Assembly: GCF_032062105.1 (NCBI RefSeq)
Contig: NW_026933724.1
Location: forward strand, 372,001 to 436,000
Source: Saccostrea cucullata
Taxonomy: Eukaryota
DNA length: 64,000 nt
Direction: 5' to 3'
The translations under genes were made by a program, and so were the position numbers. A model generated the notes under the pieces. That model did not search any database, was not told the origin of the DNA, and was given only the letters and a program-made list of their open reading frames with translations. Positions 5,545 through 49,602 of this stretch are shown here, piece after piece; position 1 is the stretch's first letter; each line of letters begins with the position of its first letter.

Positions 5545-6822
5545 ATGAATGATTTTAAAATGGCTGGCAAGCAGAGAACCTTACCATTCACCTCTCCACG
5601 AAGAGAAACAAGAGCTGGCAGGGTGACGGAAAGAGATGCTAAATTGAGGCTAGAGGATAATGAGAGAGTTAATCATACTTCTGTGTCACATGACAAGTTA
5701 GAGAGACAGTCTACCATGCTCAAGTCCAGTCTAAACAGTTCCACAGTCAGAAGGCGACCGAACAAGAAGCCAAATCAAACCATAGCATCCAGTCAGAAGC
5801 TGAATCAGTTAATAATAGGAAGACCAAACATGACTGACAACAAAGTCAAAGACACCGACTCTTGTTTGAGACAACTGGAAGATCTATACAGCCAGGCTGA
5901 ACAGGTCTTAGGCTGTACAAAGGAAGAAGGCCTCTGTTTTGTAGAAGTTTTCAGAAGACTGTTGGAAGGATATGATGCCAAAAGCTCTAGGATAGAAGGA
6001 TTGCTGGTGGAAAAGGCAGACCTTTCAAAGAGAGTCATGGACCAAGAGGAGCGAATAGAAGAAAATTCAGAGTACTATAAAAAAGAACAAGCCAAATTTA
6101 AAAATCAAATAGATCAGAAAGATGTGGAAAATCAAAGACTGGATGATACAATTACAAAGCTTAAAGGAGAGAAAACTGAACTATTTCAAAAATTAAATAG
6201 ACTACAGGAACAGCTAGAGGAAGCAGCCATTAAACCACAAAAATCCTACTGCCAGGAATGCAGAACAGAAATCCTGGAACCTGTCTTTTCCTTAGAGTCA
6301 AAAGATGTGACTGAATTTGAAAAGGAAATTGGTCAAAATAGTATATCTTCCAAAATGAAAAATCTAGATAGATGTCATTCAGAAGAAACTCCATCTAGGA
6401 ACTTTGTAGTAAGAAAGCCCACTAAAAGTGATAGTGAGACATTAATCAAATCAGAACTACCAGATTCTGGTCCTCCCTCCCCCAGGCACGATTTCTTATG
6501 TGATTCATCACAGTCCACACCCAGATCATCAGTAAAATTAACTGAAACTGAAATATCTGGACGAGACCATTCAGACCCTGTAGCCAGTATCTTACTCAGA
6601 CCTTCAGTCCAACATAGGGATCTTCAGGTTGATAATCTACAATCCACGACAGAAATGTTTTGTAGATCCAGTTCCCGACACCACTACCTCCGCAGTAATA
6701 CAGAGATTTCATCCTCCAGCTCCTACTTCAGCTTTGCTAATCAGTCCGAGTACAGCGGGCCTGGACTCTGGTCAAGAGAGAGCAGTTCATTGTCATTTGC
6801 TAACAGTACATACTCAGAGTAG
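5545..6822 (+). CDS. Array gene 1: coiled-coil protein with doubled SFAN motif (425 aa, single coding exon)
   Basis: Long uninterrupted ORF. Splice acceptor ttttcag 2 nt before ATG. Contains QKLNQLIIGRP, a heptad-rich E/K/Q centre and C-terminal YFSFANQS / SLSFANST, all shared with neighbouring ORFs. Confidence 0.85.
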   Translation: MNDFKMAGKQRTLPFTSPRRETRAGRVTERDAKLRLEDNERVNHTSVSHDKLERQSTMLKSSLNSSTVRRRPNKKPNQTIASSQKLNQLIIGRPNMTDNKVKDTDSCLRQLEDLYSQAEQVLGCTKEEGLCFVEVFRRLLEGYDAKSSRIEGLLVEKADLSKRVMDQEERIEENSEYYKKEQAKFKNQIDQKDVENQRLDDTITKLKGEKTELFQKLNRLQEQLEEAAIKPQKSYCQECRTEILEPVFSLESKDVTEFEKEIGQNSISSKMKNLDRCHSEETPSRNFVVRKPTKSDSETLIKSELPDSGPPSPRHDFLCDSSQSTPRSSVKLTETEISGRDHSDPVASILLRPSVQHRDLQVDNLQSTTEMFCRSSSRHHYLRSNTEISSSSSYFSFANQSEYSGPGLWSRESSSLSFANSTYSE

Positions 6823-7099
6823 CTAGCACTGTCTAGCAGTATATACTCAGAGTAGCCAGTATTAGCTTAATATAAACACAGTCATCAAAGAGTTTTCAAA
6901 ATTATACATTTTCATGAAGTTTTTCCTGATTTCAGTATAAACAAGAACACTTCTATAAACCATCTATATAATTTATCTAAAATCACACGACCAGATCATT
7001 TATTACATGGTTGTAACTGGAAATGCTTTATCTTCTATAAAAACTGTCTACTGGAGTGTCAATCAATAAATGTCGCCACATACCCTCTGAGTCAATTTC

Positions 7100-8570
7100 A
7101 TTATACCCCCCGCTTGAAAAGCGGGAGGGTATATAGTAATTGTTAATTCCGTCCGTCTGTACGTCTGTCCGTCCGTCTGTTACGCTTTGGGGTACCCATC
7201 TCTTATCCGCAACTCCTCTCATACCACTAAATGAAATTTGATGAAACTTTCACAGAATCTTTATTACATATTGCCATAGTGCACCTCCTATTTTACTTTT
7301 TGATCCGACACATATTTTGGGTTTCCCGGCCACAGCAAAACATGGACTTTGCCATTATAACTATATGGAGGCGGGGGGTATCATTTATTTAATATACTGT
7401 AAATTCACATATTTTTGTGGGGTAAATTTTCATGGTTTGAGGAAAAAATATGGGTTCTTGGGGATTTAATTCAGGGGTTCAAAACTTTTTTTGTCATGGT
7501 CAAGTCCAGGACTTGAGGAGTAAATTTTAGGCAAGTCCGAGAAAGAAATTTCAGAGTCCATATTTACCTATACATCATTAAATTTATGTAACTTATAATT
7601 TATTTTCATTTGTTGCATTGAATGAATAAAGACTATTAATATAGGTTTTATTTGTCCTCCATAAACTGTCATATAGTCATACATGAGTATTTCAACACAA
7701 TACCAGACTGATAGAATATACATTACAATAACTTTTACAAATACTCACGACTGAATAAACCATGTTACAATAAATAGAAATTGGAATGTGCTGTAAGTCA
7801 CAGCTAAAACCGAAATTTAACAAACTCATTGCCGTTTGTCATATAGGAGGAAACATGAGGAATTGCGTAAAAGCAAGAGTCTAATCGCAATGGAAAATAA
7901 AAAGACGGATTGTATTTTCGAAACGTTCGTAATGTTTTATGGGTATTTTAACGCTCACAAACCCACATTTTTACTTAATACATTTGAGAATTTGCTTTAT
8001 TTTTAGCATTACGATCATTTTTTAACTTATAAAAAAAGATAAACAAGAAACATAGCCAAGTCCCAGGACTTTGGCGAATTCTAAATGCCGAGTCCGGATC
8101 CGGAATTTGTTAGTCCAGGACGTCGGACTTGAGGATTTTTGAACCCCTGTTAATTTTGCGGATGAAGAATTGTTGAATAGTAATATTATGTGAAAAATTA
8201 CATTTCATGGTGGACTTAAATTTGTGGGTCTCTTCATACCTAGAAAACCATGAAAATTAACACCCACGAAAATTAGTGATTTCACAGTACTTGGAAACCA
8301 CAAAATGTACAGATTTTATATTTATATTCCGTCCGTCCGTCCGTCTGTTACGCTTTGGGGTACCCATCTCTTATCCACAACTCCTCTCATACTACTGAAG
8401 GAAATTTAATGAAACTTTCACAGATTCTTAATTACATATTGCCATTGTGCACCTCCTATTTTACTTTTTGATCTGACATATATTTTTGATTTTCCAGAGC
8501 AAAACATGGACACTGCCATTATATTCATATGGGGGGGGGGGGGGGTATCATTTAGTGAGCTCATTGCTCA
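7100..8570 (-). mobile_element. HINE-like element (partially duplicated) with nested TA MITE (7397-8288) and CAG..CTG element (7472-8149)
   Basis: Terminal hairpin cccgcttgaaaagcggg, (CCGT)n microsatellite and a duplicated body (7148-7390 vs 8328-8555). Inner TIR caggggttcaaaa/ttttgaacccctg with ttaatt 6-bp TSD. Confidence 0.7.
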
Positions 8571-8821: not shown

Positions 8822-10051
8822 AACAAGAGGCCCATGGGCCACATCGCTCACATGAGAAGCTTTGACAATTCTGTTCTTTACTAGATTTCCCCCTTGTAAT
8901 ACATATTGTGACCCCACCCTACCCCACTAATCATAATTTAGACAATTTGAAATCTACACTACCCCAGGATGCTTCCACATAAGTTTCAGCTTTTCTGGCC
9001 CAGTAGATTTTCAAAGATTTTTCCTATATATTTCTATGTAAAACTTTGATTCCCCATTGTGGCCCCGTCCTACCCCCGGGGGTCATGATTTGAACAATTT
9101 TGAATCTATATACACCTCTCAAGGATGCTTTCACATAAGTTTCAGCTTTTCTGGCCCAGTGGTTCTTGAGAAGAAGATTTTCAAATATTTTTCCTATATA
9201 TTTCTATGTAAAACTTTGATTCCCCATTGTGGCCCCGCCCAATCCCCGGGGGTCATGATTTTAACAATTTTGAATCTACACTACCCCAGGATGCTTTCAC
9301 ATAAGTTTCAGCTTTTCTGGCCCAGTGGTTATTAAGAAGAAGATTTTCAAAGATTTTTCCTATATATTTCTATGTAAAACTTTAATTCCCCATTGTGGCC
9401 CCGCCCAATCCCCAGGGGTCATGATTTGAACAATTTAGAATCTACACTACCCAAAGATGCTTTCACATAAGTTTCAGCTTTTCTGGCCCAGTGGTTATTA
9501 AGAAGAAGATTTTCAAAGATTTTTCCTATATATTTCTATGTAAAACTTTGATTCCCCATTGTGGCCCCGCCCAATCCCCGGGGGTCATGATTTGAACAAT
9601 TTAGAATCTACACTACCCCAGGATGCTTTCACTTAAGTTTCAGCTTTTCTGGCCCAGTGGGTCTTGAGAAGATTTTTAAAGATTTTTCCAATATTTTTCT
9701 ATGTAAAACTTTGATTCCCCATTGTGGCCCCGCCCAATCCCCGGGGGTCATGATTTTAACAATTTAAAATCTACACTACCCCAGGTTGCTTCCACATACG
9801 TTTCAGCTTTTCTGGCCCAGTGGTTCTTGAGAAGAAGATTTTTTAATGACCCAACCCTATTTTTGTCTTTTCTTGATTATCTCCCCTTGTGAAGGGATTT
9901 GGCCCTTCATTTTAACAATTTAAATTTCCCTTTATATAAGCATGCTTTGTACCAAGTTTGGTCAAAATTGGCCCAGTAGTTCTTGAGAAGAAGTGGAAAA
10001 TGTGAAAAGTTTACGGACGGACAGACGGACGGACGGACAACGGACACAATG

Positions 10052-10096
<45 letters not shown>
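8822..10096 (+). mobile_element. HINE/Helentron-type element with ~6 satellite units
   Basis: aacaagaggcccatgggccacatcgctcac start, tandem ~166-bp units, (GACG)n and the same terminal hairpin as 1668-2952. Confidence 0.85.
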
Positions 10097-10097
<1 letters not shown>

Positions 10098-10274
10098 TGT
10101 TCTGGACATTCAGTGATTTTATTTGTGTCCTTCGACACAAAAGATCGTTGAAGCTGTCTGTATTTTAATCAGTATGGCAGCAGCTGTATAAATTTTAACC
10201 ATTAAGTGGTGTTTGCTGCTATATAAAGAACTATAAGTGGAATATAGCATTTTTTGCCCCCCCCCCCCCCCAAT

Positions 10275-10860
10275 CAAGTAAGCAGGCTCTGAAAACATTA
10301 AGTCTCTTAAATGTTGCTATGTCAGTGGGCAGAGCATTCCAGTCCCTGATGGTCCTGGGGTAGAAGGATCCCATATGAACTTGGGTGTCACTGGATGGTA
10401 TGTGCAAAGAATGCCCTCCCATGTTACAGCTGAGTCTTGATGGTGGCACTAGTTTGCCTGATGTTTCAATTCTGACTAGTACCTTGTGGATCTTATATAG
10501 AAGGATTAACCTGGCCCTCTTTCTACACTCCTCCAGTGTTTCCCAATGCAGGGTGTCCAGCATATCTGTGACCGACGAGGTGTTGTGGTATCAGTTAGTA
10601 ACATACATGGCTGTCCTGCATTGGACCATCTCAATCTTATATATATATCATCTTTCATGTATGGGTCCCAGGTAGTACAAGCATACTCTAGGGCAGGTCT
10701 TACGAGTGACTTGTAGGCTTTCTCTTTGATGTTTGCATTTCTTATGTTCAAGTTACGTTTTAGAAAGCTAATGGTTATTATATTTATTGTTAGCTTTCTT
10801 GCAGATAGTGGATATATGATGGTTCCATTTCATATCTGATGTAATTGATACACCTAGATA
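10275..10860 (-). mobile_element. 5'-truncated, frameshifted LINE (C-terminal region after reverse transcriptase)
   Basis: Minus-strand peptides KEKAYKSLVRPALEYACTTWDPY, MLDTLHWETLEECRKRARLILLYKI and SFYPRTIRDWNALP are typical of the non-LTR retrotransposon ORF2 C-terminus. Split across frames. Confidence 0.85.
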
Positions 10861-12121: not shown

Positions 12122-13591
12122 ATGGCACAGAACCAGACAAAGAGAGGCAAAAACTCCAAGTCAAGTCCCAGTGACAAGGAGATTGCCAGCAAAGGAGAGG
12201 CTACAAAGAGTGAAAATGATCAGGATCCACACCCAACAGATTCCAGCAGGAAAGTCACAGAGAAGGGGAAAACTTCTGAGAATTCAACAAAGAAATCATT
12301 GGAACAATCTAGAACATCCCTAGATTTAACCAAGAAACATTCGGACCAGGCCAAAAATCAAGGAGAAACAGCCAAGGGCACAAAACCAAAAACAAGCTCA
12401 ACCAAAAAAGTTTTAAAAATAGAGAGGAATCATAGTGAAGCCAAAAAGATTCTGTGTCAAATGAACAGTCAGCTCACAGAACTTCTACTGGGCCGGCCTA
12501 GTTTAACAGAGAGTCCGACAGACTTAACGCGAAGGTCACTGAGTGCTATACAGACCTTGACCAAGGACATTGGGTCTGTTCTCGACACGTCAAGTAAGAA
12601 ATCGAGTTTTCTTGAGGACATAGGACATCTCTTGCAGGAAATTTCTCAAATCAAGCAAATGCTACATAAATGTGAGTCTAATTTAAGAAGTGAAAAAGAA
12701 CTAGTGAAGTTCCACACCAACAGAGCCAGAACATTTCAGAACGAAATTGAGAAACTGAAGGTGGAGAAAAAGCAAGTAGCTGACAAAAATAAGGAATTGG
12801 AAGATACAATAATGGAGTTGGAAAGTAAATTCATGCAAACAAGGTTAAGTCATCAAAATGCCATAAAAATACATACTGAAAAGCAGGCAGGTCTGCAGGA
12901 CAAGGTCAATAAATATGAATTCTCATTATCGTCATTGGAGGAAAAGAATTCAGAGCTTACCACGGACAATCAGAGTCTGAAAGACAAAATTCTGGAGTTA
13001 GAACAAAGAAATAAAGCCCTAGAAAAGAAGTGTCAGGGGTACCATAAAGACATCGAGAAAGTTAATCATAAAAACAAACACCTGGAAAACAAAAACAGGA
13101 AACTCCAGACCGAAGCCGATATGATGAACGTTCGAAACATAGAATTAAAAAATAAGAACAAATCAATTGTAAAAGAATCAAATCATTCTGAGGAGAAAAT
13201 CAAAGACTTGGAAGAAAAAGTCCATAATTTATCATCTGAACTAGAAACTTGTTACACTGAAAATGATGGGCTTAGGGATCAAATTCATCACCTAAAATTA
13301 AAGCTTTCTGAATATGAAGATGAGTCTGATGTGTTAATAGAGGATTACACTCAGGTATTGAAGGAGAGAGGTGAAATATACAGGAGGCGATTGTCTGGAT
13401 CGTTTACTCCATCAGCATTACACAAACTGCGGAGGGATGATAGTGAACACTCCCTGATCAGTTGTGCCAACAGTGGACTAAGTTCTACCCTAGAGAGTCA
13501 GGGTAGAGTCTCGGCCGCCGCTAGGCCACGCTCAGAACTCTCTGATGTCAGCTTCGCAAACAGTTCCCACTCAGATGAAGTGCCGAGGTGA
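12122..13591 (+). CDS. Array gene 2: coiled-coil protein with SCANS/SFANS motifs (489 aa)
   Basis: ORF with SQLTELLLGRP, a long coiled coil, LISCANSG and DVSFANSS. Candidate 5'UTR intron 11661-12090 (gtaagc...tacag). AATAAA near 13758. Confidence 0.87.
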   Translation: MAQNQTKRGKNSKSSPSDKEIASKGEATKSENDQDPHPTDSSRKVTEKGKTSENSTKKSLEQSRTSLDLTKKHSDQAKNQGETAKGTKPKTSSTKKVLKIERNHSEAKKILCQMNSQLTELLLGRPSLTESPTDLTRRSLSAIQTLTKDIGSVLDTSSKKSSFLEDIGHLLQEISQIKQMLHKCESNLRSEKELVKFHTNRARTFQNEIEKLKVEKKQVADKNKELEDTIMELESKFMQTRLSHQNAIKIHTEKQAGLQDKVNKYEFSLSSLEEKNSELTTDNQSLKDKILELEQRNKALEKKCQGYHKDIEKVNHKNKHLENKNRKLQTEADMMNVRNIELKNKNKSIVKESNHSEEKIKDLEEKVHNLSSELETCYTENDGLRDQIHHLKLKLSEYEDESDVLIEDYTQVLKERGEIYRRRLSGSFTPSALHKLRRDDSEHSLISCANSGLSSTLESQGRVSAAARPRSELSDVSFANSSHSDEVPR

Positions 13592-16221
13592 AATAGGAAG
13601 TGATGATAAGTAGACTTCTTAAGGACTGATATAAAATCAAGCAGACCATCAATGTATTGAATTTCAACAAGTTGTGACACCTGGATGTAATGATTTTGAT
13701 CTCGATTACAAAGTCTGTATTTACTTACTGCCACAAATACTCAAGTGTTAAAATTCAATAAAACTGTTGATAATAGATGTCCAAATATTGCTTGTCAAAT
13801 CTTTTTTCAAATAAATAATGCAATGTAAGATAATCACCCCTCTTAAAGTATTTCCGTGATGACGTATGTTTTACTTTACTTGTAAAGAAATCTAGAAGTT
13901 GCATCTATTTAAAGAATTACTTTATCATGGAGGTCAACAGATCAACAGCATAGGGGAAGCAAAATATGTGGTCCACTTATTGCCAAAGCTAGTTTCTATA
14001 TCATAATCTTGGCCTGAAAAGGCATATCAAATTCTTTTAAATGATCATACAATTGATATTATACTTGAAAAAAAAAAATTATTGGTTTCTGTACAAAACA
14101 AGAATTGCCAATGTATGTATAAGTACTGCAATCAGCAACGGACTGCAAGGTGGTGTACCTATGGCAACAGTAAACAACTGTAAAGAAATTTTATTTCAGG
14201 AATCGTCAAATTTTGTTTGCTTGAGCCCACAAACCCTCTTCACACAAGTGTGCACATTTTCTAAACATTCAATTTACTTTATCATAAACAACATGACCAT
14301 GTTAATACCTCTTAATTCAATGATGAAATATTCAATCAATCCACAATAAAAGGTGTATCATCTGTCTGTCAATTATTTTTATAATCATAAATGTTCAAAG
14401 TACACTTTTATATCTGTTCAATATCATTATCTCTGAGAGTGTTCAAAATAATTCATTACTTCATATATTTTCTTAAATTAAACCAGAAGTCTATGACAAG
14501 ACTGTAGCTCCACAGTTTGTACTGATAACAAAGGAAGAGAAAAGCAACACTTGGACTGCAACTGCAATAAATGGAATCATTATAATAATCCATATTTCAG
14601 TTTCTTTTTGTAGGAAGAGTAGACTTATGAAAAAATTTAAACACATTTCTATTTTTGTAACCATGGCAACTTCGTTTTTGTAACCATGGTAACTCCATTC
14701 ATCAAATTCTAAAACCGAAATAAACAATTATGAATCTTGGTGTTGTCTACTTGTGTGCAAATTTATATTGAAATAAGATCAAAACTGTTGGAGAAGTAGG
14801 ATTTTGAAAAAAAAATGACAGAAATTTTATTTTTAGTAACCATGGCAATATCATTCATTGAAATCAAAAAGCTGTAGAAACAAATATAAATTTTAGTGTT
14901 GTTAACTTGTGTGCCAAGTTATATTGAAATCAGACCCAAACTGTAGAAGTAACTTGGTAAATGTACTTCACAGAAATTTAATTTTTTAGTTGGCAACACC
15001 ATTCATTGAAATATATAAACCAATAAACAGAGTTATATAACTTGTGACCAAGTTATATTAAAATCAGAATAAATTTGTAGGATGGGGTAGCATTTTGAAA
15101 AATTTTTTACAAACATACAGGCAGATGGATGATAGACACTATACTATGAAATAAGATCTTCTGGTCTCGGACCAGTAGAGCTAAAAATTAATTCTACTTT
15201 TTAAAGAGAAAGATTGTAAAAAAAAAAAAAAGAACATTGTAAAAAAAGTGATCTTTGTTGGGATGGATATCTTTCCAGTGACTATAAAATTGTGAACAAC
15301 TTTTGATATCATGAATATCAAACATAAAATGGAGAGAGAGAGAGAGAGAAAAAGTCCCAACCACCTTTACTTATGTACTTGAACCAAAATTACTTGAATC
15401 AAGTCATTTGAGTCGTTTGGAAGTTTTTTTTTTTCTGTGTCCCAATAGGCTGGAGATAATGCGTTTTGACTGTAGATGGTGCTTTTTTTTTAACACATGG
15501 AGATTATTTACATCACAAAACCCATAAAATTTTCTGAAGTAAAAAATGAGATGATAAATGACACCCCATGCAGTGTGAAAACCGACAGAACATAACAAAT
15601 GACAAATCAATACCAAGAACCTGCATGTCTGCAAATAAAATAAAACAATATTTCTACCTTACACAGGACACCTCTATTTGCATCTCATTCACATATCTCC
15701 AAGTTAGGATATTTAAATGATATTTAAAAATACCTTGGCAAATTAATTTGACAAAAGAAGTAGTGATGAAACAAATCTTGTATTTATTCAGACGTAGGAC
15801 GAGAAAATTAGTGAGTTATCTATATCGTGTATGGATCAATTAAGCAAACAGAGTGTCAATCTGTCGATCCCCAATGTCAGCAAACAGTTTAATACTTAGA
15901 CCTTCTCTCATGCTGCCTAAAAAAAATAAGAAAACACTCCCATCATAAAATGTTGAATTTTTCATCAGTTTTACCTAAGGTTTACAAATACAGCAAGCCT
16001 AACCATTGATACAAAGCTACTGCCTCTTAGAATTAGCAGGTAACTTTTAAATAATTCAAACTTTAATTTTAATATATAGAATTGTACTTATGAATGTTAT
16101 CATTTTATAAGGTAGCGGAAATTATATATATATAACATTCAAATTTTTATGTTTGATTGCATGTAGTGAAAAATAAAAAGAAAAAAAATAAACAGACTTT
16201 AAAGTATTTTCTTGATCAGGA

Positions 16222-17205
16222 ATGGCAGGGCGTACAAACAGAACTGTGTTGAGGCTGCAGAGCTTCCCGATGGGGAGATCTAGACCAACTCCGCTACAAT
16301 CACGAAATCCTGTGTCTCCCAGAAAAACTAAAGGTGTGGCCACCAAACCACAGCCAGACAACCAAAAACTGGTAGTGGACCAGCTGTGTCAGTTCCTTCT
16401 GGGTTCAACTGCCATGAGTGATAATGCTTTCCTCAACTGTCAAAATACACTGAAAAAACTTGAACAGTTGCAAGCTGATATACTTAAAGAAGTACCGTGG
16501 GTAAAAGACCTGCCTGATCAGAATTATTTTGGAGGCATAATAGGACTTCTTTTGAAGGAATATCAGAAGCAAAAAAGTGATATTAAAAATTGGGTTGCCA
16601 ACTGTAGAGCAAATGAGAGGTTAATGGAATACAAAGGAAAACAAATCAAAGAACTCCAAAACAAGCATGAAATTCAGATACTGGCAAAAGATGAGGAAAT
16701 ACAAGGATTGGTTAAAGAGATAAGCCACCTGAAAGTGGAAAATAAAGGACTAACAGAGAACAATAACAAGCTACAGGAGCTAATTAGAAGGGAAGAAGAA
16801 GAGTGTAAGGAAAAATTGCAGAAATTTATATCTTCAGTGAATGTAAGTGAAATTGGGTCAAAGAACCAAAAAGAATCGAAACAAAGTAAAAGACCAAAAT
16901 CCACCTCCTCAGTTTCGGAGTGCCCATCCTCTCCTACAGGAAACTTTTCAAGAGAAACCTCAGGGAAATCTACCAGGAGTGATTCAGACACATGTGTTTC
17001 TTCTGTAAGTTTTGCCAACAGTGGGATTTCTACAGTACCTAACTTCAGGAATATAGAACAAGAGATCAGCGATATGTCAGAGTTAAGCTTTGCTAACAGT
17101 ACTCTTTCAGAACTTGGGAGATCTTGTTTACTATGTTCAAAAACATTCAACACTACACAAGTTTTTCTTTGTAACCAATGCATTGATAAATTCAAAATTA
17201 GTTGA
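16222..17205 (+). CDS. Array gene 3: coiled-coil protein with doubled SFANS and C-terminal CxxC-CxxC (327 aa)
   Basis: ORF with DQLCQFLLGS, coiled coil, SVSFANSG, ELSFANST and CLLC..CNQC. Candidate 5'UTR intron 16040-16219 ends 2 nt before ATG. Confidence 0.85.
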   Translation: MAGRTNRTVLRLQSFPMGRSRPTPLQSRNPVSPRKTKGVATKPQPDNQKLVVDQLCQFLLGSTAMSDNAFLNCQNTLKKLEQLQADILKEVPWVKDLPDQNYFGGIIGLLLKEYQKQKSDIKNWVANCRANERLMEYKGKQIKELQNKHEIQILAKDEEIQGLVKEISHLKVENKGLTENNNKLQELIRREEEECKEKLQKFISSVNVSEIGSKNQKESKQSKRPKSTSSVSECPSSPTGNFSRETSGKSTRSDSDTCVSSVSFANSGISTVPNFRNIEQEISDMSELSFANSTLSELGRSCLLCSKTFNTTQVFLCNQCIDKFKIS

Positions 17206-17842: not shown

Positions 17843-18835
17843 ATGGAGGCTACAAAACATACAACCACTAACAAGATACAAAAGCCAAAAATCAAAAAGT
17901 CACCAAAAGGGAAAGCAAATAAAGTTAAAGGAGGAATGCCTCCTGGCAGAGAATCTACTGGACACAAACAGCTCCACAGGAGTAGAAACCAAGAAAATGG
18001 CAGCACTGAAGAATACGGTCCTATACACAAAACATTCAGCACCCAATTACATGACCTTCTGCTGGGAAAGTCAAATGATACTCTTCTAAACAAGATGGGG
18101 CATGCAATAGATCGTGGCAAAGAACTCGAGACCAGACTGAATCAGGAAATTCCAGGGGCAAAGAATGCAGAGAGTTTCTTTGACAAAGTTGATTTTACGA
18201 TTTCTGAGTTTATTTCAGTGAAAGGAAAAAGCAAATTAAAACTGACAAGAAAACTGAAAGAAATGCAAGAAGAAAAGCAGAAGCTGAAAGACAATTCCGA
18301 TGACTTAAGCCATTACATTGAAAATCTGAAAACCTGCACTGACCAGGAAAGCAAAAGTCATAGGAATGCCATCACATTTTACCTAGCAGAAAATAAAAAA
18401 CTAAAAGAAGAAATTGAAAATCTAAATACAAGGCAAATGTTGTTAGAAAGAGAGAAAAATGAACTACAAGAGGAATGTTCCACAAGTCTGAGCAGCCTTC
18501 ACAGGTTAGAAAATAAAACTATAAAACTGGCTACCAACAATAAGAAACTGAACCAGGAATTACAAGCAACAGCAACAGACAGAAAGAAACTTAAATCAAA
18601 GCACAGACAACTGGTGTTAGAAAACAAAGACTTGCATCATGAAAATGAGACGCTGAAAAAAAGGCTTGAGAACAATCCTTTAATTTGCGATTTAAATGCA
18701 GGTCAACATGATTGCAGAAAATGTATGTCTTCAGGGAATGAACAAGATTTTGTTAGAGACTGTGGAAGACTGTCATCTGCTAACACAGACTGTTCAGAAA
18801 TAAGTTTTGCCAACAGTTCATGTGCTGAAATTTAA
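17843..18835 (+). CDS. Array gene 4: coiled-coil protein with SFANS motif (330 aa)
   Basis: ORF with TQLHDLLLGKS, ESFFDKVDF, coiled coil and LSSANT..EISFANSS. Candidate 5'UTR intron 17688-17823. AATAAA near 18869. Confidence 0.85.
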   Translation: MEATKHTTTNKIQKPKIKKSPKGKANKVKGGMPPGRESTGHKQLHRSRNQENGSTEEYGPIHKTFSTQLHDLLLGKSNDTLLNKMGHAIDRGKELETRLNQEIPGAKNAESFFDKVDFTISEFISVKGKSKLKLTRKLKEMQEEKQKLKDNSDDLSHYIENLKTCTDQESKSHRNAITFYLAENKKLKEEIENLNTRQMLLEREKNELQEECSTSLSSLHRLENKTIKLATNNKKLNQELQATATDRKKLKSKHRQLVLENKDLHHENETLKKRLENNPLICDLNAGQHDCRKCMSSGNEQDFVRDCGRLSSANTDCSEISFANSSCAEI

Positions 18836-19307: not shown

Positions 19308-20168
19308 ATGCCAGAACCACCAAAACGAAGCAATTCCAAGCTAGGCCCTGTCGATAAAAGGAAAAATCGCCAGCCTATTTTTATGAAAACAACTATTGCA
19401 AGACGAGCAAAGGAACAGCAGGTCAGTAAGTGTTCACAGGAGCAGGACAATCTGATAAGACAAATCCACCAACTTGTACAAGGTTCTCATTTCTCTGGTA
19501 CCGACTCTGTTGCTGCTGCAAAAGAAACCCTCAGCCAACTGGAACATTTTATCATTGAGACTCAAAAACTTGTACCTACTGCACAAAGTGTGACATGCCT
19601 TGCAGAGCTAGCAGATCCACTTTCTACAATGGTCAAGCAGCTACAATTGGACTTACAAGAAAAAGAATCAGGGTGTGAACAACAGAAAAGGATGTCCGAG
19701 TTTTACCAACGCAAATTACAGGATGCCGAAAACAACCTGCAAATGCAGATAATCGAGTTTGAGGAAAAAATAAAAAACCTAACAAAAAATAACCAGGATC
19801 TTCAGGCAAAACTACGAAATTCCGAGTGCCAACTTAAAGAAGTGAACAAACGTTTTGAAGAGGTCAAAATAATGTGGGAACAACATAGGCAGCTGGAGAG
19901 AGTGAAGACTTGGGTCATTTCATCTCCAAAAGATTTTTTGGGAAGTGAAGAATCTAAATTAGTTGATTCAAAACTAAAAAGACCTATTTCTGCTTTCTCT
20001 GGAAGAAAAAACAAAGAACAAACACTATGCCCGAACAAACCTTGCAGAGTTGACAGTGCCATATCAACAATAAGCTGTGCTAATAGTGGAACTACTCATG
20101 TACCAAGTATAAGAAGGAAAAACAGTGGGCAGACAGACATCAGTTTTGCAAACTGTAGTGAAACATAA
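19308..20168 (+). CDS. Array gene 5: coiled-coil protein with SCANS/SFANC motifs (286 aa)
   Basis: First ATG is at 19308 (the track starts at a TTG, 19290). Contains RQIHQLVQGS, coiled coil, TISCANSG and DISFANCS. Confidence 0.83.
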   Translation: MPEPPKRSNSKLGPVDKRKNRQPIFMKTTIARRAKEQQVSKCSQEQDNLIRQIHQLVQGSHFSGTDSVAAAKETLSQLEHFIIETQKLVPTAQSVTCLAELADPLSTMVKQLQLDLQEKESGCEQQKRMSEFYQRKLQDAENNLQMQIIEFEEKIKNLTKNNQDLQAKLRNSECQLKEVNKRFEEVKIMWEQHRQLERVKTWVISSPKDFLGSEESKLVDSKLKRPISAFSGRKNKEQTLCPNKPCRVDSAISTISCANSGTTHVPSIRRKNSGQTDISFANCSET

Positions 20169-35033: not shown

Positions 35034-36700
35034 TATGTCTTCTCCTCAAAAGACCACCCCCCCAAAGACACCATTCTAGGCTCTCTCCTGGCAAGTCTTT
35101 CACCTATCACTTCCACAGCATGGCATGGCACTATATGAAAATGGAGAGGAGTAAAATGTGACAGTCCAGACTGGAATTTGAACCCAGACCCCATGAATCT
35201 CTAGTCAGGTGCTCTACTGAATGAGCTATCTGACCTCCCACAATACAGTCAGTCTGACTGCCACATTTTACTTTCCATAAATGCCTTCACTCCCCCAAAG
35301 AACCAACCCAAGCTCTTCTCTGGCATGTCTTTCACCAGTTACTTCAACAAAATGGCTTGGCACTAAATGTAATGGGAGAAAATAAATGCAATGGACCACA
35401 CCAGGATTCAAACCAGGGCCCCCTAAATGTTTAGTCAGGTGCTCTACCAACTGACCTAGCTGGCCACAGGCAATTGAACCCTTCTGACCACTGCATTCCA
35501 CTCTTCTTAAAAGACCACCCCAAAAGACACCACCCTAGGCTCTTCCCTAGCAGGTCTTTCACTTGTCACCGTTTATTTGTAATTGGTGAGAAGAAAAATG
35601 TGACAGTCCAGACTTGGATTTTAACCCAGGCCCCCTGACTCTCTAGTCAGGTCACCCACAATACAACCAGTCTGACCCCCACATTTTTCTCCTTTAATTC
35701 TCCCCCCTCCCCCCCAAGAAACAAACCCAAGCTCTTCCCTGGCAGGTTTTTCACTGTTCACTTCAGGGGAATGGCTTGGCACCAAATGTAATGAGAGAGA
35801 GATAAATGGAATGGTTTACCAGGATTTAAGCCTGAGCTAGCTAGTCACTGGCATCAAACCAACCTTACCAATGCATCCCCCCCTGAAAAAGACCATCTCC
35901 AGAAGACTCCAAAAAAGGTTTTTCCTTGGAAGGTCTTTCACCTGTCACTTCCAGGGCATGGCATGGTTATTTATGTAACTGAAGAGAAGAAAAATGTGAC
36001 AGGTGGGACTAGAATTTCAGGCCCCCTGAATCTATAGTCAGGTGCTTTACTCACTGAGCTTTCTGGCCATCCAAAATTGAACCAGTTTGACTGCCACATT
36101 TGTTTCTCAATAAATGCCTTCAACCCACCCACCTCCAAAGAAAACAACTCAAGCTCTTCTCTGATAGGCCTTTATCATCACTTCAAGGCTTAGCACCAAA
36201 TGCAATGGGAGAGGAGAAAAATGCAATTGACCAGCCCAGGATTCAAACCTGGGTCCCCTGAATCTTAGTCAGGTTCTGTATCTACTGAGCTAGCTGACCA
36301 CAGGCAATTGAACCCATCTGAGCACTGCATTCCCCTCTCCTTTAAAGATCCCCCCAAGACACTAACCCAGCCTATTCCCTGGTAGTTTTTCACCTGTCAC
36401 AACTTCTTTTGTAATAAAATCATATGTTCTTAAATGCAGGTCACGGTTACCCACTTTTCAGTTGACTTTCTCCAAGGACCAAAGATGCAGCAACTGACAA
36501 AGTTTGATGAATGTAAGTCAATCAATACTTTATAATCCTAAATCTTTTATAATTTTTGCTTTTCGTCAATGTTAAATGAAAACACAAACTCAAATTACAT
36601 GTATTCTTGAGTTGATATTGCAATTGCCTGAAGGTGTTATGTCGGCGCAAGTGGCAAACTAAGTTTTTTGTGGCACAACTTGAAGAATCAAGTTGTAATA

Positions 36701-38135: not shown

Positions 38136-39268
38136 ATGGATACCAGTGAGCTGTATGCTTTGGAGACTTGTCGGAAAGACATCAGTAATAATCTTCTGGT
38201 GACCGATGCTGTTCTACGTCGACTGGAAAGTACGGACATGATATCCCACCGGGATAGAATGTGTTTCATGGTAATCAGTCTCATAAAACAATTCAATTAA
38301 ATAACTACACTTAAGGACAACTCTAAAGCAATCTTGCTCCAAAACAAAATTTACCTGCTTTTGTGCAACAATGATTTATTTTACAATAATGAATTCTGGT
38401 TTTTTTTTTGTTTCAGAGAATAAGACAGAGTTCAAAGAGAAACACCCAATTAGCAGAGATAATGCGCAAGAAAGAAAAAGGTTTCAGTGCATTTACGGAA
38501 GCTTTAATGCTTGAGAGGAACATAAACCAATACTGTGTGGATAAAATGCAAAAAATGGTGAAGCACCATAAGCAGCAGCACAGGCTCAGAGAACTAAAAG
38601 AAACAGATCTTGTCACAGATGGAAAACCATTCAGGGACACGAAAAAATGTCCCAAGCCCTCAGTGGTGTTTGAGAGCTTCTACAATTCAGTGGCTCCACT
38701 GGTTCATGGTGATAATAAAGAAAACTGTATGGAAAATACAGAGAAGCAAAGCTGTGATGGCAGTGACATTGTGAAGGCCCTCAAACACTGCAGAATGGCA
38801 CTGGATCCCAAAGAGGAAAATTCAGATGTTTCATTAAAAGACCTGCAAAGCAAATACCTTCAGAAGAAACTGCAGACCATTGCCGATGATCTTCGATCAG
38901 AAAGAAGCATGTGGAAGAAAAGGATGGAAAGTCTCCTAGTAGAAAATGATGAATTAACAACAAAAGTGGAAGAACTTGAAAGTGAGCTACAGCAGGAACG
39001 GGATGAAAAAGACAAAATAATTCGTGAAACAGTGGACAGAATTGTCAAAGAGAGGCTGCTTCGACTAAATCACGTAGATACTAAAACTTCCTCTAAACCC
39101 AGTGTGACCATCAACATTCACAACCATGGACATTTTCAAATGGGTGGTACTAATGCCATGGACCTGGACTCTGATTCAACATCAGAATCGGACCAATCAG
39201 AGAAGCCGGACTATGAGAATCAGAATACACCGGACTTCCCTGGTCTGGCAGACAGCGTTCTGTATTAA
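38136..39268 (+). CDS. Array gene 8: CARD-like + coiled coil + RHIM-like tail (exons 38136-38270, 38417-39268; 328 aa)
   Basis: Spliced N-terminus MDTSELYALETCRKDISNNLLVTDAVLRRLESTDMIS..|RIRQSSKRNTQLAEIMRKKEKGFSAFTEAL fits the six-helix CARD pattern. GT-AG intron keeps the frame. Confidence 0.82.
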
Positions 39269-39482: not shown

Positions 39483-41104
39483 CATTTATATCCAAATAAT
39501 CATTTAAAGTATGATTAAAAAGATTAGTTACTGTATTATTGATATGTATCACAGTACATTTCATTGATAGAACAGCCACTGATCAAGAAATCTGTACAGG
39601 TAATATGCCTAGTGTTGTTCATGAACTGATAAATGGCAATAGTTTTCTTAAGAAATAAAGGAGAAAATATTCAGTGGATGTAAATATTTTTTTTTGAAAT
39701 GGAATTAACTTAAGTGCGCAACTTGAAATGATTTTTTACTCTCAACCTTCAATGATATTAAAGTAAATATTAAGTGCCACAAAGTAATATGTTTTCATAT
39801 ATCTATATATATCAGATTTTAATTTATATGAAAATCATTCAGATCATCATACTCATTAACCCTAAGTTTATATTTTCTCATTCCTTCAAGAAATTTATAT
39901 AGTCCTATAATTCTATTTTAATAAAGCCTTCCTTTCTACCTACAGGTAAAAATAAATAATCAGAACTTCAATGTAACTCTTCATAAATTTATCAAAGAAT
40001 GCCATATAAATAAGTTACAAATAGCCACTCTAAAAGAAATTTTAGGGATACTTCTCAATATAGGTCTACTTCAAATGATCTTTGTTTACACAAAGTTCTT
40101 AATCTCCCTCAATACACAGAATGAGGGGGTCCATGTGATAATTAAAGGACAGACAGCTGCCAAAAAGGAGTACAATATTAGTGTCAATACCCCAATACAC
40201 ATTTAAAAAGTAGAGGAAATTTATTGACAGTACTCCAAACTAAGGAGTTGAACAGCGTCCAATCACCAAAATAAAGGCAATAACACGGAGAGAATTTAAA
40301 TATCCCTAGGTTGGACACTCAACATAAGGCTTTTAATTCTTGGTCATTTAAATCCAAGGTAGTCATTGACGTCACAAAGTAAATGAAATACTGACACAGT
40401 TCTAATGTAATGTTCACATGCGTTTGGGAAATCCCAGCTATTGGCACCACGATCGGACGGGTGGCATTCACAGCCTTGACCAACTGAGATTTCTGTGGGT
40501 AAGTACATAGAGTCCTCCTATCTAATACAATATGTTACATTTTTCATAACCCTTATGGTCAATTAATTTCGACAGTATTGGAAAGTCTTCTGTTCCAAGT
40601 CCTGCATAATAAAATTAAATGATAGTGACAACTGACTTGCGGACACTATCCATCAAAAGATAATTTCATGAGAATGAAATACCAATTTCAAACTATTTTT
40701 CAATTTTTGAAAGACACAATGATTAATATTTTTTTTATCTTGAAAATATTCTTTGTTTGAAATTAAGATCATATCAAAAAACGGGGTTTCTGTGTAACCA
40801 AATCAAAATTCACCTGAGGTCTTTAACTGTCATTTTTTAACAACTGTATCAATATCAAATCATTCTCTGAATTTTTAATTTATCTTACATGTTTAAGTAG
40901 TGATAAGCATGCTCCTAAAATACTGATTTTTTGCCAACTTTAACCCGATTTACGTCACGCAACTCTAAAATTGGTGTGTCTCCGTCTACTTTACTCATTT
41001 AAATGTCACAGGAGAAGACGAAAGGTGTTATGTTTTGAGAGAGGACAAGCAAATCAATTTCTTTTTTATTATCTTAAACAGGACCTTTCTCAAGAAACAC
41101 AACA

Positions 41105-42247
41105 ATGGACCCAGCAGAACGTCAGGCTCTACATAATGTTAAGGAGGAACTCCAGAATTGTGCCGTTATCACAGACAAGATGCTGGTTCACTTCTTACAG
41201 AACCAGAAAATCACAAAGGCTGAAAAATATGAACTCTCAGTAAGTAGATCTCACTTTTCCTTTAAAAGAATCTATATAAAGTTACTTTTTTTTTATACCT
41301 TAATTCATTAACTTTATCATAACTTTGAACAAGAAATTAATTCTTTCACTTGATTTTTACAGAGGCTTGGTGCCAACTGTCAGAGAGTAAAGAGAATACT
41401 GCAGATCATGAAGAACCGAAAGGAGTCTCTGAAAACTCTAACAGAAGCACTTCTTCTTGATGTGAAAAATGACTACATTGTTCAGAAACTTCGGAAGAAA
41501 GTTCGATTCTGTCGAAAACGCCTCCAAGCTCAGGAAAACCAGACATCCTCATACTTTGGGCAGCTAGATGATGTGGCAGATATTCTTTACACACGTGGAT
41601 ATTTGACAATATATGGAGAATCTAAAAAAGTCACTGCAGGGACAAGCCATCAAGCTCTGGTGGAGGACATTAACAAATTCGTTGGAGATATCACCAAATG
41701 TCGCCAGAGTTTGGAGCCTTCAAGTGAGAGACAGAGTTTTCAAGAAATCATCGCCGAATACAAAGAAAAGAAACACCAGGAAATTGAAAACGCAAAACTT
41801 GTGTGTGCCAAACTTGTGAAAAGCAAAAACAGTGACCTAGAAGATAAACAGAAGCATATCAAAGACTTACAAGATGAACTTACGAAACTGAAAGTAGAGA
41901 ATGAATCCATGCGGAAGAAAATGGGAATAGAAATCAAAACTAAGGTACAGGAGAATGTGGACCGGCTTCTAATGCTTCCTCGTCTGTCTCCCGCTGATCC
42001 CGTACCTTACGTCGAAACAGAGGAGGATATTCTGGACAGGAAGTTACGGCAGCGTTCCTCGGTAAAACGCCCCGAGCCTCAGGAACATGCTCTTTCCGAC
42101 TCGGAGTCTGACTGCGAGTCTGACAGTGATCTTCCTGTGTCAAATAAAATGACCACCTCCACGACCCAAAAAGGATCAAAAATCGTCCATAACTACAATA
42201 TCTATAACAACCATATGTACAGTGACACAAAAATTTATCAAAATTAG
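41105..42247 (+). CDS. Array gene 9: CARD-like + coiled coil + N/Y-rich tail (exons 41105-41239, 41363-42247; 339 aa)
   Basis: MDPAERQALHNVKEELQNCAVITDKMLVHFLQNQKITKAEKYELS|RLGANCQRVKRILQIMKNRKESLKTLTEALL. Donor gtaagt and acceptor tttacag are in frame. Clear paralog of gene 10. Confidence 0.88.
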
Positions 42248-44371: not shown

Positions 44372-44402
<31 letters not shown>

Positions 44403-44908: not shown

Positions 44909-47900
44909 GTGAAAACATGTATACATGTGTAATCAAAACTTCGAGAGATAGAGGGTAAAAAATCAATGAAAAGTGTGTACATTTAATGGGACCCAGATCT
45001 AAGTTCGAGAGAGATCTCAAGTTCTTGAGTTTAGGAGTAAATTAGTTATATAGAGGAAAAAACTGGACCAAAGTTCACTTCAAGAGATTGAGAACTTTGA
45101 GAGGTCAGAGTTCGACCCATGGAGAGTCACCTGTATTGTCATAGCAATTCAATATCCATGCAATCAAGTTTAGCAAACTAGAACAATGCATCTGTAAGGT
45201 TTGATCAGCATAATATAATAGATCTACTCAGAGAAGGGGTAGGTTGATTTTTGTGCTACAGTAACTGCTTTTCAAAAGCAATTTCTATCTTTCATCAAAC
45301 TCTTATTCAATTTTTTGCACTTTTTCCCCAAGGTTAAGGATTTAAACATTGGTAATGCCCACTCTGATAAGATTGCCTCTCAAATAAAATTTACAGGCAA
45401 TATAATCTTCTGAATGAAAGATGTATCACAAAATAAGGATAAAACTGAACACAGAGGGATCCTTAAACAAGTGCCAATAAATTACTAACAGAGTCGGTAT
45501 TTTACCCTCCTCTGGGGAGGGTCAACCCAGACCCCCAACACGAACATGTATAAGTAAGAACTAGGTAAATACTGCCGGCTTCCAATTCAAATATTCAATT
45601 CAAATCAGCCCAGATACCACTCTGAGAAACTCAAATTAGACCTTTCAGATTTTGATTTGTTGGTTATCCAGAGAAATTCTTTTGTAGATATCAGTTAACA
45701 ACTACCTGGGAATTTGGAAACAACCTCATATTATCTTGAATGCAAAAATTGATTTTATTGGAATCACACTGAAAGCATGATTTGCATTTTGAAATAAACC
45801 TTGAATTTCAACACCAATTATTATTTCATGTAATTATCGAATTGCTTTTGCCAAGCCTTTAAAAAGTTAAGCAATAAAAAAAAACTTCTGTTTCTTTTTT
45901 AAATCTGATTCAATACTGCGGTGAATGCACAATTAAGAAATTTTACACAGCACCATTCGGTTGAATGCTTACATGCAAACTAAGAAGAATATCTGAATTC
46001 CAGGAATATTACATTTGTCAGTGGAAGACCAAAAGACCTTGTGCTTCAAGAATAACTCTGATGTATGATGTAATAAATGTGACAAAAAATGCACACTGCT
46101 AATCCATTTCTTATGATTTTGGTAATTAAAAGTAAAATTTCAAAAATATTTCAGTCTAATTGCAACAGATGAATTTCTGTCAGTTAAATTGTATACATGC
46201 ATGTATATTTATAATCTTTTATACAATTAAGACAATAAGTAAGAAATTGAAGTAAAAAATTGAACTCTGTTTTTCTCTCAACCTTCGATCCTAGATTAAA
46301 ATTAACGGTCAATTTAATTTTTCTATCACATTTTAATCCTTGTGCATAGTGCCCAATTTTTATGGCACAAAATGTAAAAAACAAAAAAAAACAACAACAA
46401 CAAAATTAGAAAATTAGAATGGAAATATTAAGCTCATTAAACATTAAGACAGGAACAGTTAAAATATTTTATTTAAAAAAAACACAAAAAAAACAGGAAA
46501 TAAGAATTGAAATATTTTAAGTCCATTATAAACACATGACAGAAAAGGTTGAAAATCATTAATTTAATAGCAGTAAAATCCAATTGCAGGTATATATGTA
46601 CCTAACATGAAGAATGCCTCTTCTAATGGCTTTACAAATGTATAGTGATTTAAGAGAATTTTTTAAGAAAGACCAGCAATCAGGTAAGAATCTTGCACCC
46701 TATAAAAATCCTATCAATTCTATTAAATCACCAAAAGTAACATATATACATTTAATTTACTACGATTCCTTGTGTGTGTGACGTCAATTGGATTAAAATA
46801 CAAGTGTACAGCGAGGGGTGACTTACCACTAAGGTGAAGGAGCTACAGTTAGAAGGATTTATATCAGTACTGTAACTAAACTAACTACCCAAAGGCAGCT
46901 GTGGTCTGGGAATAACCTAAATTAATGGTAAGTTATATTTTTCTTGCTTCTTAAAAATTAATTGATGTGATTTTTTTTCAAACATTGTCATTTATAAAAT
47001 ATAGACTAATAAAATGGATAAGATTTATAAAATTCATTTGAATACAATCTATACTTCACAAAATATTTTAAATCTTTATAAATATGAAGTTATTAAACAG
47101 AAGCCAAGCTTAAAAGTACACTGAAACTAAACAAATTGAGAGCAAACACAGAACTCTAAAATATGAAAGGTGGGATCAGGTGTCATGAAGGAGTAAACAT
47201 CCCCTGTCATCCCATCACACTTGCTGTGTGTTCCCTCTCAAGATTGGTCAATTAGTTGATTCTGAGGTCATTTTGGTAGATGCTAATTTACAGTCTTCAG
47301 AGATAGTACATAAATATCATTATTGTAAAATCAAGAAATAGCAACTGCATTTTCATATAAACAGATGATTTTTTTCGTTAACTTAAAAAAAAATTAAATA
47401 CTTGATAACATGTTATCATCTTTTATTTAATGTTTTAGCAATTAATATCAAATATTACAAATAAAAGCAAATCAAAAAAAATGAAAATCCTTATCAAGCA
47501 ATGACAGTCAAATATTTTTTTATGTCTAATAAAAAAGGGTATGTAAAGAATATACAATCGGCCCAAATGTTGAAGACATTTTGGGCCTTTTTTTAAGTTA
47601 ACAAAAACATTTTCCCATACAGTTCTTATCCGATTTTTTTTCTATTTACTGCAAAGAAATCAATAACAGATGTGGGGCCCTATACCTCAATTATTTTTTT
47701 TTAATAACAAGTGGTTTTAACTGATCAATTAACATACTTAAAATTGAGAAATTTAGAATGTGGGACTAGTGCATGACTTGTTCAAATTTAATGCATTTTT
47801 ATTTTTAGGTTGTTTGATAACCCCTTCATTTTAACAGGAATTATAAACCAAATTGTCAGATCTACTTCATTCACTTTTGAGGTGAAAAAAAGGGAAATGA

Positions 47901-48434
47901 TCTTTGATTAATGGTCTTCAAAAGTTTTGGAGAATTTACTAGATTTGCCTCTATTGGGCTGTAATTTTTTAAGAGTGTAATAAAAAGAGTATACTTGTAA
48001 AATAAAGATTTTTTTCTTAAAATTGTATGGTAAAAAAAAATGTATAGAAAAACATCCTTAATTCAAAAATAGGTAGAAATCAAAGAGAACCTGTCATGAA
48101 TAAGACACTGGTCCTCTTTATCACAGAGTAGGGAAAGGGAATATATGCAATCAGAAAATAAATAGGGGGTTTTGGGGTCTACTTCTCAAGATCTCAATCC
48201 TGCAGTTCAAGGAAAAACAAGTAGACCAATACAGGTGGTGGGCTACTGTCTTTTTAAATTCAAACACATGGATGACTCACCGTTTGGCACCAGGTTATCG
48301 TCTTTTGTTTCAAGACTGATACTAGTAATCTTTAGTTACATAGGATCATTATAGGTTTAGTCTAACTTTGAACAATTCCATGAGAAAGTCTCAGACCTCT
48401 GATTTTTCTTTGAAGCAGAGGGAATATTCAGAAG

Positions 48435-49602
48435 ATGGACTCTGCAGAGAAACAGGCATTACATAACTTGAGACATGACTTACAGAGCCACATGGTGATC
48501 ACAGATCGCATTCTCAGGCACTTACTACAACACAATAAAATCAACAAAACCGAGAAACATGACTTGTCAGTAAGTATTAGAAATCCTTACTTCTTTGGCA
48601 TAAATTAGTCTTCTACTAATAAGATTTTTAAAAAATATTTTCTACTAGTGGTTTTTGTAATTTTTGAACTTTTATATGTCAGTTTTGCAATTGATGTCTA
48701 ATTATTATTTTTTCCAGATTCATGGAGCTTCTTCACAAAAGATTAAGAAGCTGATACAGATCTTACAACACCGAGAGCAGCCCCTACAGGTGATGACAGA
48801 TGCCCTCTTGTTGGAGACAAGAAACATTTTTATTGTTAAAAAACTAAATAAGAAAGTGAGATATTATCGTTCAAGGCAAGAGCAGGAAGAAAACAAAATA
48901 AATAACAGCAATTGTAATCAGCTTCAACCAATCAGTGAAATTCTGTTTAAAAGGGGATATGCTGTTGTTTATGGTACATGTCATAAGCTGGCATATCCCA
49001 AAGGACATCAAAAACTAGTGGAGGGAATGAATGTCTTCATGAAAACAATAGAGGACTGTAGGGATACCTTCAATGGGTGTGAAACCAGACATTTCCAAGA
49101 CATTGTTAAAGATTACTGTAACAAAAAGGAAAAAGAAATCAAGGATGCCAAAGCCCTTTGTGCCAAATTAGTCAAGACTAAAAACTGTGAACTTGATCAG
49201 AAAGCTGGGGAAATGAGTTCCCTTAAAGAAGAAGTGGAAAAGCTCAGAAGGGAAAACGAAAAAATACGCAAAAATATGGATCAAGAAGTTCGTGAAAAAG
49301 TTCGAGAGGGTGTCCGACAGAGTTTACTGTCCATGCCTATGCTGAGTTCGTGTCTGGGTTTAAGGACAACTAGTATGGGCAGGGCACGAGAACACTCCGA
49401 GTCTTCTGGGTTTTCTGGGAATAGTGACACAGGGTCCACATCTTCCTCTGACCCCCGGGAGGACAGCGAGGATGAGGAGGGATTTAATACGGAGACTACG
49501 GACACTTACAGTGAGGCTGGCCAATCAGCAACGAGGATCACCCACAATTACAACATCTACAACAACTACATGTATAGTGAAGCTAGGCTTTATCAGTCCT
49601 AA
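48435..49602 (+). CDS. Array gene 10: CARD-like + coiled coil + N/Y-rich tail (exons 48435-48569, 48718-49602; 339 aa)
   Basis: MDSAEKQALHNLRHDLQSHMVITDRILRHLLQHNKINKTEKHDLS|IHGASSQKIKKLIQILQHREQPLQVMTDALL. Same exon length and phase as genes 7-9, and colinear with gene 9. Confidence 0.88.

Follow-up and report, generated by a model that had tools for sequence, protein, structure and literature searches.

The DNA analysed here (the window) is a stretch of 64,000 nucleotides of the oyster Saccostrea cucullata (contig NW_026933724.1, positions 372001-436000, without N), and its main feature is a tandem array of genes for proteins that combine a coiled coil with short helical domains and, in part, CARDs. 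A reading made from the sequence alone (the sequence-only reading) had placed ten plus-strand genes within 5545-49602, and all ten were located at that span. They are numbered G1-G10 from left to right; positions are those of the window unless the contig is named. The claim of a ten-gene array with six CARD-less genes followed by four CARD genes did not hold. About seven more co-oriented genes (U1-U7) are present upstream on the same contig, and five of them have CARDs, so that the array comprises about 17 genes and the window represents its right half. The actual order is CARD genes, the six CARD-less genes G1-G6 (SFANS genes, after their tail motif) and again CARD genes.

The array is hosted in antisense orientation inside the body of the CCDC73 gene, a nesting that had been overlooked. 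The 5' coding exons of CCDC73 are found on the minus strand at 54803-54964, 55208-55312, 57266-57367 and 59181-59279 (Pfam CCDC73, E 1e-5) and match exons of Pinctada. In S. echinata, C. virginica, C. angulata and O. edulis an annotated gene on the opposite strand spans the entire fetched locus, and the array genes therefore sit inside this host gene, which was identified as CCDC73 by Pfam in three of these four oysters. DNA comparison revealed no further conserved exons among the array genes. It is therefore likely, but not proven, that the array occupies a single CCDC73 intron of about 150 kb.

About nine genes of the array contain CARDs, namely U3-U7 and G7-G10. The first exon of G7-G10 has 45 codons (135 nt) and is followed by a phase-0 GT-AG intron within the CARD; this length of 45 codons, with a GT behind it, is shared by each of the eight CARD first exons detected in the array. 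G8 (38136-39268, plus strand; exons 38136-38270 and 38417-39268) encodes a helical domain, a coiled coil and a RHIM-like motif (39104-39160); its ratio of nonsynonymous to synonymous substitution rates (dN/dS) is 0.10. G9 (41105-42247, plus strand; exons 41105-41239 and 41363-42247; dN/dS 0.02-0.08) encodes 339 aa, has the same sequence as RefSeq XP_062577304.1 and ends in an N/Y-rich motif (42182-42223). Its sister gene G10 (48435-49602, plus strand; exons 48435-48569 and 48718-49602) also encodes 339 aa with an N/Y-rich end motif (49537-49578). A 62-bp tandem duplication of the G10 end at 49558-49673 has copied the terminal motif just past the stop codon. U6 and U7 resemble G8-G10, and these five proteins consist of a CARD, a short helical domain, a coiled coil, an acidic linker and a beta-strand-type end motif. 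U3, U4 and U5 have RAIDD-like CARDs (E 6e-10). The first exon of the CARD gene U7, which is located at contig 370961-371818, was not found in this assembly, though it is present in S. echinata, which may be due to either a loss or an assembly gap. At the far end of the array, U1 and U2 (contig 293282-294775 and 319203-320126, co-oriented with the array) are coiled-coil genes that share a C-terminal Cys/His motif. We take this motif to resemble a BTK-type zinc finger; Pfam gave only a faint CHORD match for it. A dispersed relative with CARD, helical domain, coiled coil and RHIM-like end exists in two near-identical copies (C3072:573.7-574.7 kb and C10254:23.3-24.3 kb).

Single CARD exons of the window scored below the Pfam cut-off. 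A profile of U6, U7, G8-G10 and their orthologues matched BCL10 (E 7e-8), RAIDD (E 3e-4) and Apaf-1 (E 4e-4), and CARD9 and CARD11 were absent among the matches of the family profile up to E 1. The AlphaFold model of residues 1-215 of the paralogue U6 (predicted local distance difference test score 84) consisted of a six-helix CARD with an extended last helix, a two-helix unit and a long coiled-coil helix. It aligned to the caspase-9 CARD with Z 15.1 and a root-mean-square deviation of 1.7 A over 98 residues, against Z 10.5 for CARD9/CARD11, and the top rows of the structure comparison were all CARDs. A first AlphaFold run with the G9 orthologue (8 sequences) had given low confidence within the CARD region, and the Atlas structure search returned a generic CARD cluster only. 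The BCL10 match, the U6 model and the common intron position support the proposal that these genes carry CARDs and belong with signalling adaptors. Judged by profile and predicted fold, the CARDs of the array are real. As CARD9 and CARD11 are missing among the sequence matches, the array genes are, by this measure, not orthologues of the CARD plus coiled-coil (CARD-CC) proteins of the CBM complex (CARD-BCL10-MALT1). The published CgCARDCP-1, which we take to be a CARD-PC4 protein, is hence presumably a different gene. A CARD protein with a PC4-like C-terminal part is also encoded beside an integrase-like open reading frame (C12981, L049:869-3247), probably within a Maverick/Polinton-like element.

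The CARD-less genes G1-G6 each have a single coding exon on the plus strand, encoding 286-524 aa. G1 (5545-6822, 425 aa) has a basic N-terminus, a helical domain, a coiled coil and SFAN motifs at 6730 and 6793; an identical protein is present in NCBI and the C. angulata orthologue shows 39% identity. G2 (12122-13591, 489 aa; 60% identity to the Crassostrea orthologues) has a long coiled coil and S[FC]AN motifs at 13460 and 13550. G3 (16222-17205, 327 aa, dN/dS 0.13) contains two SFAN motifs and a putative C-terminal zinc site (Cx2C-x11-Cx2C). G4 (17843-18835, 330 aa), which C. virginica and C. angulata do not have between G3 and G5, contains one SFAN motif, and G5 (19308-20168, 286 aa) has two S[FC]AN motifs. 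G6 (26888-28462, 524 aa, dN/dS 0.11) has a divergent helical region, one SFAN motif, two conserved TQT-like motifs at 27092 and 28064 and a conserved N/H-rich island at 28181-28225. In the Pinctada array a 612-aa CARD-less coiled-coil gene (L035:3409-5244) has TQT-like motifs and a G6-like position and lacks SFANS.

Coiled coils had been claimed for all ten genes of the window and were found in all ten. Pfam detected no enzyme domain in the whole open reading frames, only generic coiled-coil matches, and the Kyte-Doolittle average over 19 residues (KD19) stayed below 1.0 across the genes, in agreement with the proposed lack of enzymatic and transmembrane domains. A KD19 value of 1.65 in G7 falls on the junction of a provisional splice model and was not counted as a transmembrane segment. 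A Ser-rich tail with a short end motif had been supposed to be common to all ten, but G7 has neither.

The tails of the two groups differ. All of G1-G6 carry S[FC]AN, compared to a mean of 0.03 of six proteins after shuffling. The full motif, [ST]xx[ST]x-hydrophobic-S[FC]ANS, is longer than first noted and occurs in 1-3 copies per protein. Serine or threonine is found at position -3 in 32/32 copies and at -6 in 22/32, often with arginines upstream, whereby the copies are related by descent and the counts not independent. The consensus of CK1 is pSxxS, as in the FASP cluster of PER2 (10.1101/2022.06.24.497549), and from the spacing we infer a CK1-type phosphorylation of this serine ladder. While the S-x-x-S spacing is suited to sequential phosphorylation by CK1 as in PER2, the ladder of the array ends in a fixed hydrophobic-S-F-A-N-S element, and kinase and partner are only putative. 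No CARD gene contains SFANS, and the Pinctada locus lacks it as well.

The CARD-group tails carry a beta-strand-type motif, which reads VTINIHNHGHFQMGGTNAM in G8. This sequence is colinear with TSIHIHNSKNVQVGSNNVM, the only RHIM above the Pfam cut-off that was found in the genome (C2547:144143-144199, also on C2848), located beside a death-domain-like exon. The tetrad of G8 is FQMG, compared to (I/V)Q(I/V/L/C)G for the RHIM core, which has hydrophobic-x-hydrophobic-x-N ahead of it and an N behind it, and other members keep part of the pattern. In a search of about 5,600 segments the array-tail profile ranked the genome RHIM second among the non-family segments (11.2 bits, E 0.09). Because Pfam makes no RHIM call on the array tails, we refer to them as RHIM-like and not as RHIM. 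The death-domain RHIM protein of C2547 is a candidate RIPK1/IMD-like partner of the array proteins.

An intron in the 5' untranslated region (5'UTR) just before the ATG had been suggested for most genes. A pyrimidine tract with YAG within about 30 nt of the ATG was indeed present in 6/10 genes, compared to 12% in the background, and a spliced contig from a public run contained a separate 5'UTR exon and the CARD-intron junction of the G9 orthologue. The promoter module of G9 is located about 700 bp before the gene and comprises a palindromic cAMP response element (CRE, 40367-40374), a kB site (40426-40435) and a 5'UTR donor near 40499, in line with the 5' exon of the mRNA. S. echinata, C. virginica, C. 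angulata and Pinctada retain both CRE and kB site, and their kB variants stay within the consensus; in O. edulis the CRE is retained together with a kB site that is missing the first G. A strict kB match occurs at just one other place in the window. G10 is preceded by a CRE palindrome at 46779 and a splice donor near 46928, both conserved (46779-46935). These sites provide the only direct hint of function, which would apply to one or two genes. Upstream of G3 a non-coding block (15521-15862) without kB or CRE site is 69-71% identical to its counterparts in C. virginica and C. angulata; it is likely the G3 promoter or a 5'UTR exon. Contigs from an RNA library of a related oyster cover most of the G6 coding sequence, and both halves of G7 exon 2 are covered by a run whose RNA nature is only a guess. 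Expression is thus shown weakly and for few members.

G7 (29189-30814, plus strand; exon 1 29189-29323, exon 2 from 29519) is a CARD gene that encodes 252 aa without interruption in S. echinata. In the window its exon 2 is broken by a 668-bp non-autonomous DNA transposon (29818-30485) with terminal inverted repeats and a TTAA target duplication, so that the family is not intact as had been assumed. Copies of up to 100% identity occur elsewhere in the genome (3592 candidates), and we presume from termini and target that the element is a Kolobok-type miniature inverted-repeat transposable element. The insertion is recent, as judged from the remaining G7 sequence, which still shows a dN/dS of 0.13. 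A three-exon G7 (GT 29766, AG 30473) would keep the reading frame; it was rejected as the native structure, since S. echinata has a continuous exon and the inserted sequence is that of a transposon. In the available runs, which stem from a related species, this splice joint had no supporting read. Between G7 and G8 about 5 kb (31600-36400) consist of dispersed repeats with tRNA-like segments, which also occur near the O. edulis locus and probably derive from short interspersed nuclear elements.

One-to-one orthologues of the array genes were found across Saccostrea, Crassostrea/Magallana and Ostrea, and those of the CARD genes also in Pinctada. LOC105328943, LOC111128314 and LOC111128306 are examples among the orthologues in Magallana gigas and C. 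virginica. The orthologues of G1-G3, G5 and G6 show 39-61% identity to Crassostrea, those of G8-G10 are 71-97% identical across oysters, and the paralogues are mostly 20-45% identical. This agrees with the earlier view of an old, subfunctionalised family. Where dS was not saturated, dN/dS of the orthologues was 0.02-0.21, indicating purifying selection. The CARD tree recovered the orthologue groups across species and placed G9 and G10 as the products of a duplication in oysters, with one Pinctada gene as their counterpart. Pinctada imbricata has orthologues of U5, U6, G7 and G9 and a U7/G8-like gene in similar order beside CCDC73 exons, and the locus is syntenic among four oysters and Pinctada. 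Neither C. virginica nor C. angulata has G7 or G8 in the interval from G6 to G9. Out of 1.84 billion clusters the family profile retrieved 20, and those with a name were all from oysters or Pinctada.

A short helical domain had been proposed as common to all genes. Homology of this domain was evident among G1-G5 and among the CARD group, but undetectable between the two groups and for G6, which is linked to G1-G5 by the tail motif only. The domains of G1, G2, G3 and G5 gave hhalign scores of 23-32, compared to a control maximum of 18.7, and G4 joined this group by leave-one-out (p 0.002). Those of G8, G9, U6 and U7 likewise group together. Similarity outside the coiled coils, on which a single family would depend, was at background between the SFANS and CARD halves, with a Pinctada bridge gene as the sole exception. 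This gene is found at the matching position on the other strand. It combines a CARD-type exon of 45 codons (p 0.001) with a RHIM-like tail, and the profile nearest to its helical domain is that of the SFANS genes (p 0.006 in one of 24 tests), with an hhalign score of 20.2 that exceeds every control. A common ancestry of SFANS and CARD genes by loss of the CARD is plausible from these comparisons, but not established.

To the right, the array locus is flanked by RIOK3, of which one exon was found at 62419-62625 (plus strand; PDB RIO3, E 1e-9). Satellite arrays of 163-166 bp are present at 1678-2101, 9005-9842, 57650-58584 and 59513-60503. A short open reading frame at 10231-10563 (minus strand) resembles the C-terminal end of a reverse transcriptase of long interspersed nuclear elements (LINE), and a long LINE-like open reading frame is located at contig 283810-287055. 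The short open reading frame 796-1245 had no family match and was left out of the gene count.

We interpret the array as an old tandem set of non-enzymatic, putatively inducible CARD / coiled-coil / RHIM-like signalling adaptors with putative CARD-less regulators, and assign a probability of about 0.5 to this reading. The CARD members would act like adaptors of the CARD9/BCL10/RAIDD type: the coiled coil would oligomerise them, the CARD would nucleate CARD-CARD assemblies that include a caspase or a further adaptor, and the tail with its RHIM-like motif would couple them to amyloid-type RHIM signalling. At least G9 would be induced via its NF-kB and CREB/ATF sites and would act in feedback after an immune or stress stimulus. 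Most speculatively, a CARD gene of the array may have given rise to the SFANS genes in oysters by losing its CARD, and the SFANS proteins may be kinase-gated regulators of the same assemblies with a CK1-type serine ladder. As a hypothesis, all members could form one family that hetero-oligomerises via the coiled coils, with the CARD-less proteins as decoys. The hydrophobic-S-F-A-N-S element fits the hydrophobic-x-hydrophobic-x-N-S start of RHIM. It is nevertheless doubtful that the array is a whole self-assembling signalosome kit of one ancestry, NF-kB-wired and with CARD and RHIM-like polymer modules in one chain, in which a phospho-gated half-RHIM strand of the oyster-specific CARD-less derivatives caps or tunes the assemblies.

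Several results weigh against the adaptor interpretation. Pfam RHIM (PF12721) had no match in the ten array tails and was found in the genome search elsewhere only, and the tails matched none of the solved RHIM chains in the PDB search. Among the array genes only G9 has a kB site. G6 and G7 gave almost no reads in two polyA runs of the related oyster. The disruption of G7 in the window and the lack of both G7 and G8 in the Crassostrea/Magallana loci examined mean that not all members are essential. The helical-domain profiles of SFANS and CARD genes scored 9.9, compared to 10.4 +/- 1.6 for block shuffles, which is background, and the bridge is one gene among 24 tests. The SFANS genes have no kB site within 2 kb and neither kB nor CRE sites in the upstream stretches scanned. 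The last points would equally fit two unrelated families in one intron, CARD adaptors on one side and, on the other, oyster-specific, serine-ladder-controlled coiled-coil proteins that serve as germ-cell, centrosomal or ciliary scaffolds or as dynein-light-chain clients. The restriction of SFANS to G1-G6, the faster evolution of these genes (39-61% vs 71-79% identity to Crassostrea), the conserved TQT-like motifs of G6 and the centrosomal coiled coils among the Atlas look-alikes of G2, which are leads only, point the same way. The Pinctada bridge gene, the position of the SFANS genes on the same strand inside the CARD array and the similar helix-Gly-loop-helix-helix layout ahead of the coiled coil in both groups argue for a connection, and we regard two separate families as somewhat unlikely.

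CRE sites also drive germ-cell genes, and the very low signal in the two polyA runs and the stable, slowly evolving orthologues, which are unlike immune receptors with fast turnover, could suggest that the whole array serves development or gametogenesis, by non-apoptotic control of caspases or as filament scaffolds, and not immunity. Non-immune, neuronal expression of CBM components in Nematostella (PMC5978004) would be in line with this. The conserved kB site of G9 and the RHIM-like tails, whose motif is associated with proteins of immunity (PMC4262963), speak against such a role, which we consider improbable. It is very improbable that the genes encode the CARD9-type CARD-CC proteins or the BCL10 of a standard oyster CBM complex. 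Their CARD and coiled-coil layout and the best match to BCL10 would fit; the family profile, however, found no CARD9 or CARD11 up to E 1, its named matches are confined to oysters and Pinctada, and BCL10 lacks a coiled coil. Molluscs are reportedly among the lineages with Bcl10 and co-evolving CBM components, and the study on CBM evolution used an oyster Bcl10 (PMC5978004) that is presumably separate from the array. Chance open reading frames or decaying pseudogenes, as the broken G7 and the missing exon 1 of U7 might suggest, have practically no likelihood left: it is contradicted by purifying selection, by RefSeq gene models from five species, by a transcript with splicing and by conserved promoter blocks, and it is refuted for G1-G3, G5, G6 and G8-G10, though not for G4.

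The array proteins share features with several known systems. They resemble CARD9/10/11/14 in the order of N-terminal CARD, coiled coil and low-complexity tail, but the coiled coil is much shorter, the MAGUK part is missing and a detectable CARD9/11 match as well, whereas a short helical domain, RHIM-like end motifs and many tandem paralogues, in oysters and pearl oysters only, are added. The divergent array CARDs are closest in sequence to BCL10; in contrast to BCL10, in which a CARD and a Ser/Thr-rich tail occur without a coiled coil, all array members have a helical domain and a coiled coil. The CARDs of U3-U5 are similar to RAIDD/CRADD, the death domain of which is replaced by a helical domain and a coiled coil. 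CARD16/17/18 are young, CARD-only decoy copies of a caspase at the caspase-1 locus. They likewise form a tandem cluster of non-enzymatic CARD genes; the array genes, however, are old and multi-domain, without a caspase in the array. Like RHIM proteins (RIPK1, RIPK3, ZBP1, TRIF; insect IMD, PGRP-LC and Pirk; amphioxus), array members have, within a tail that is disordered, a short C-terminal motif that resembles a RHIM in its spacing, most clearly so in G8. They differ by lacking a kinase, TIR or sensor domain and by scores below the Pfam threshold, and several keep the first strands only. Among invertebrates, proteins with a RHIM are linked to immunity, and Pirk of insects, whose repeats are partial, sets a precedent in that it bears a RHIM and acts as an inhibitor (PMC4262963).

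The array is real and conserved, with an unusual CARD / helical / coiled-coil / RHIM-like layout, and it includes a CARD-less block that is specific to oysters. It is apparently undescribed: literature searches by locus id, by CCDC73 with oyster and by RHIM with oyster and CARD found no published description. New here are the RHIM-like tails across the CARD group, the conservation of CRE and kB site of G9 up to the pearl oyster and the recognition of SFANS as the end of an S-x-x-S ladder. That about 17 genes were kept antisense in one host gene since the split of oysters and pearl oysters is unusual in itself. The presence/absence variation of G4, G7 and G8 and the fresh transposon insertion can be used as natural mutants. 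Oysters rely on innate immunity and suffer mass die-offs caused by herpesvirus and Vibrio, and a set of proteins with CARD, coiled coil and RHIM-like motif would provide molluscs with a link between amyloid signalling and signalling through caspases or NF-kB.

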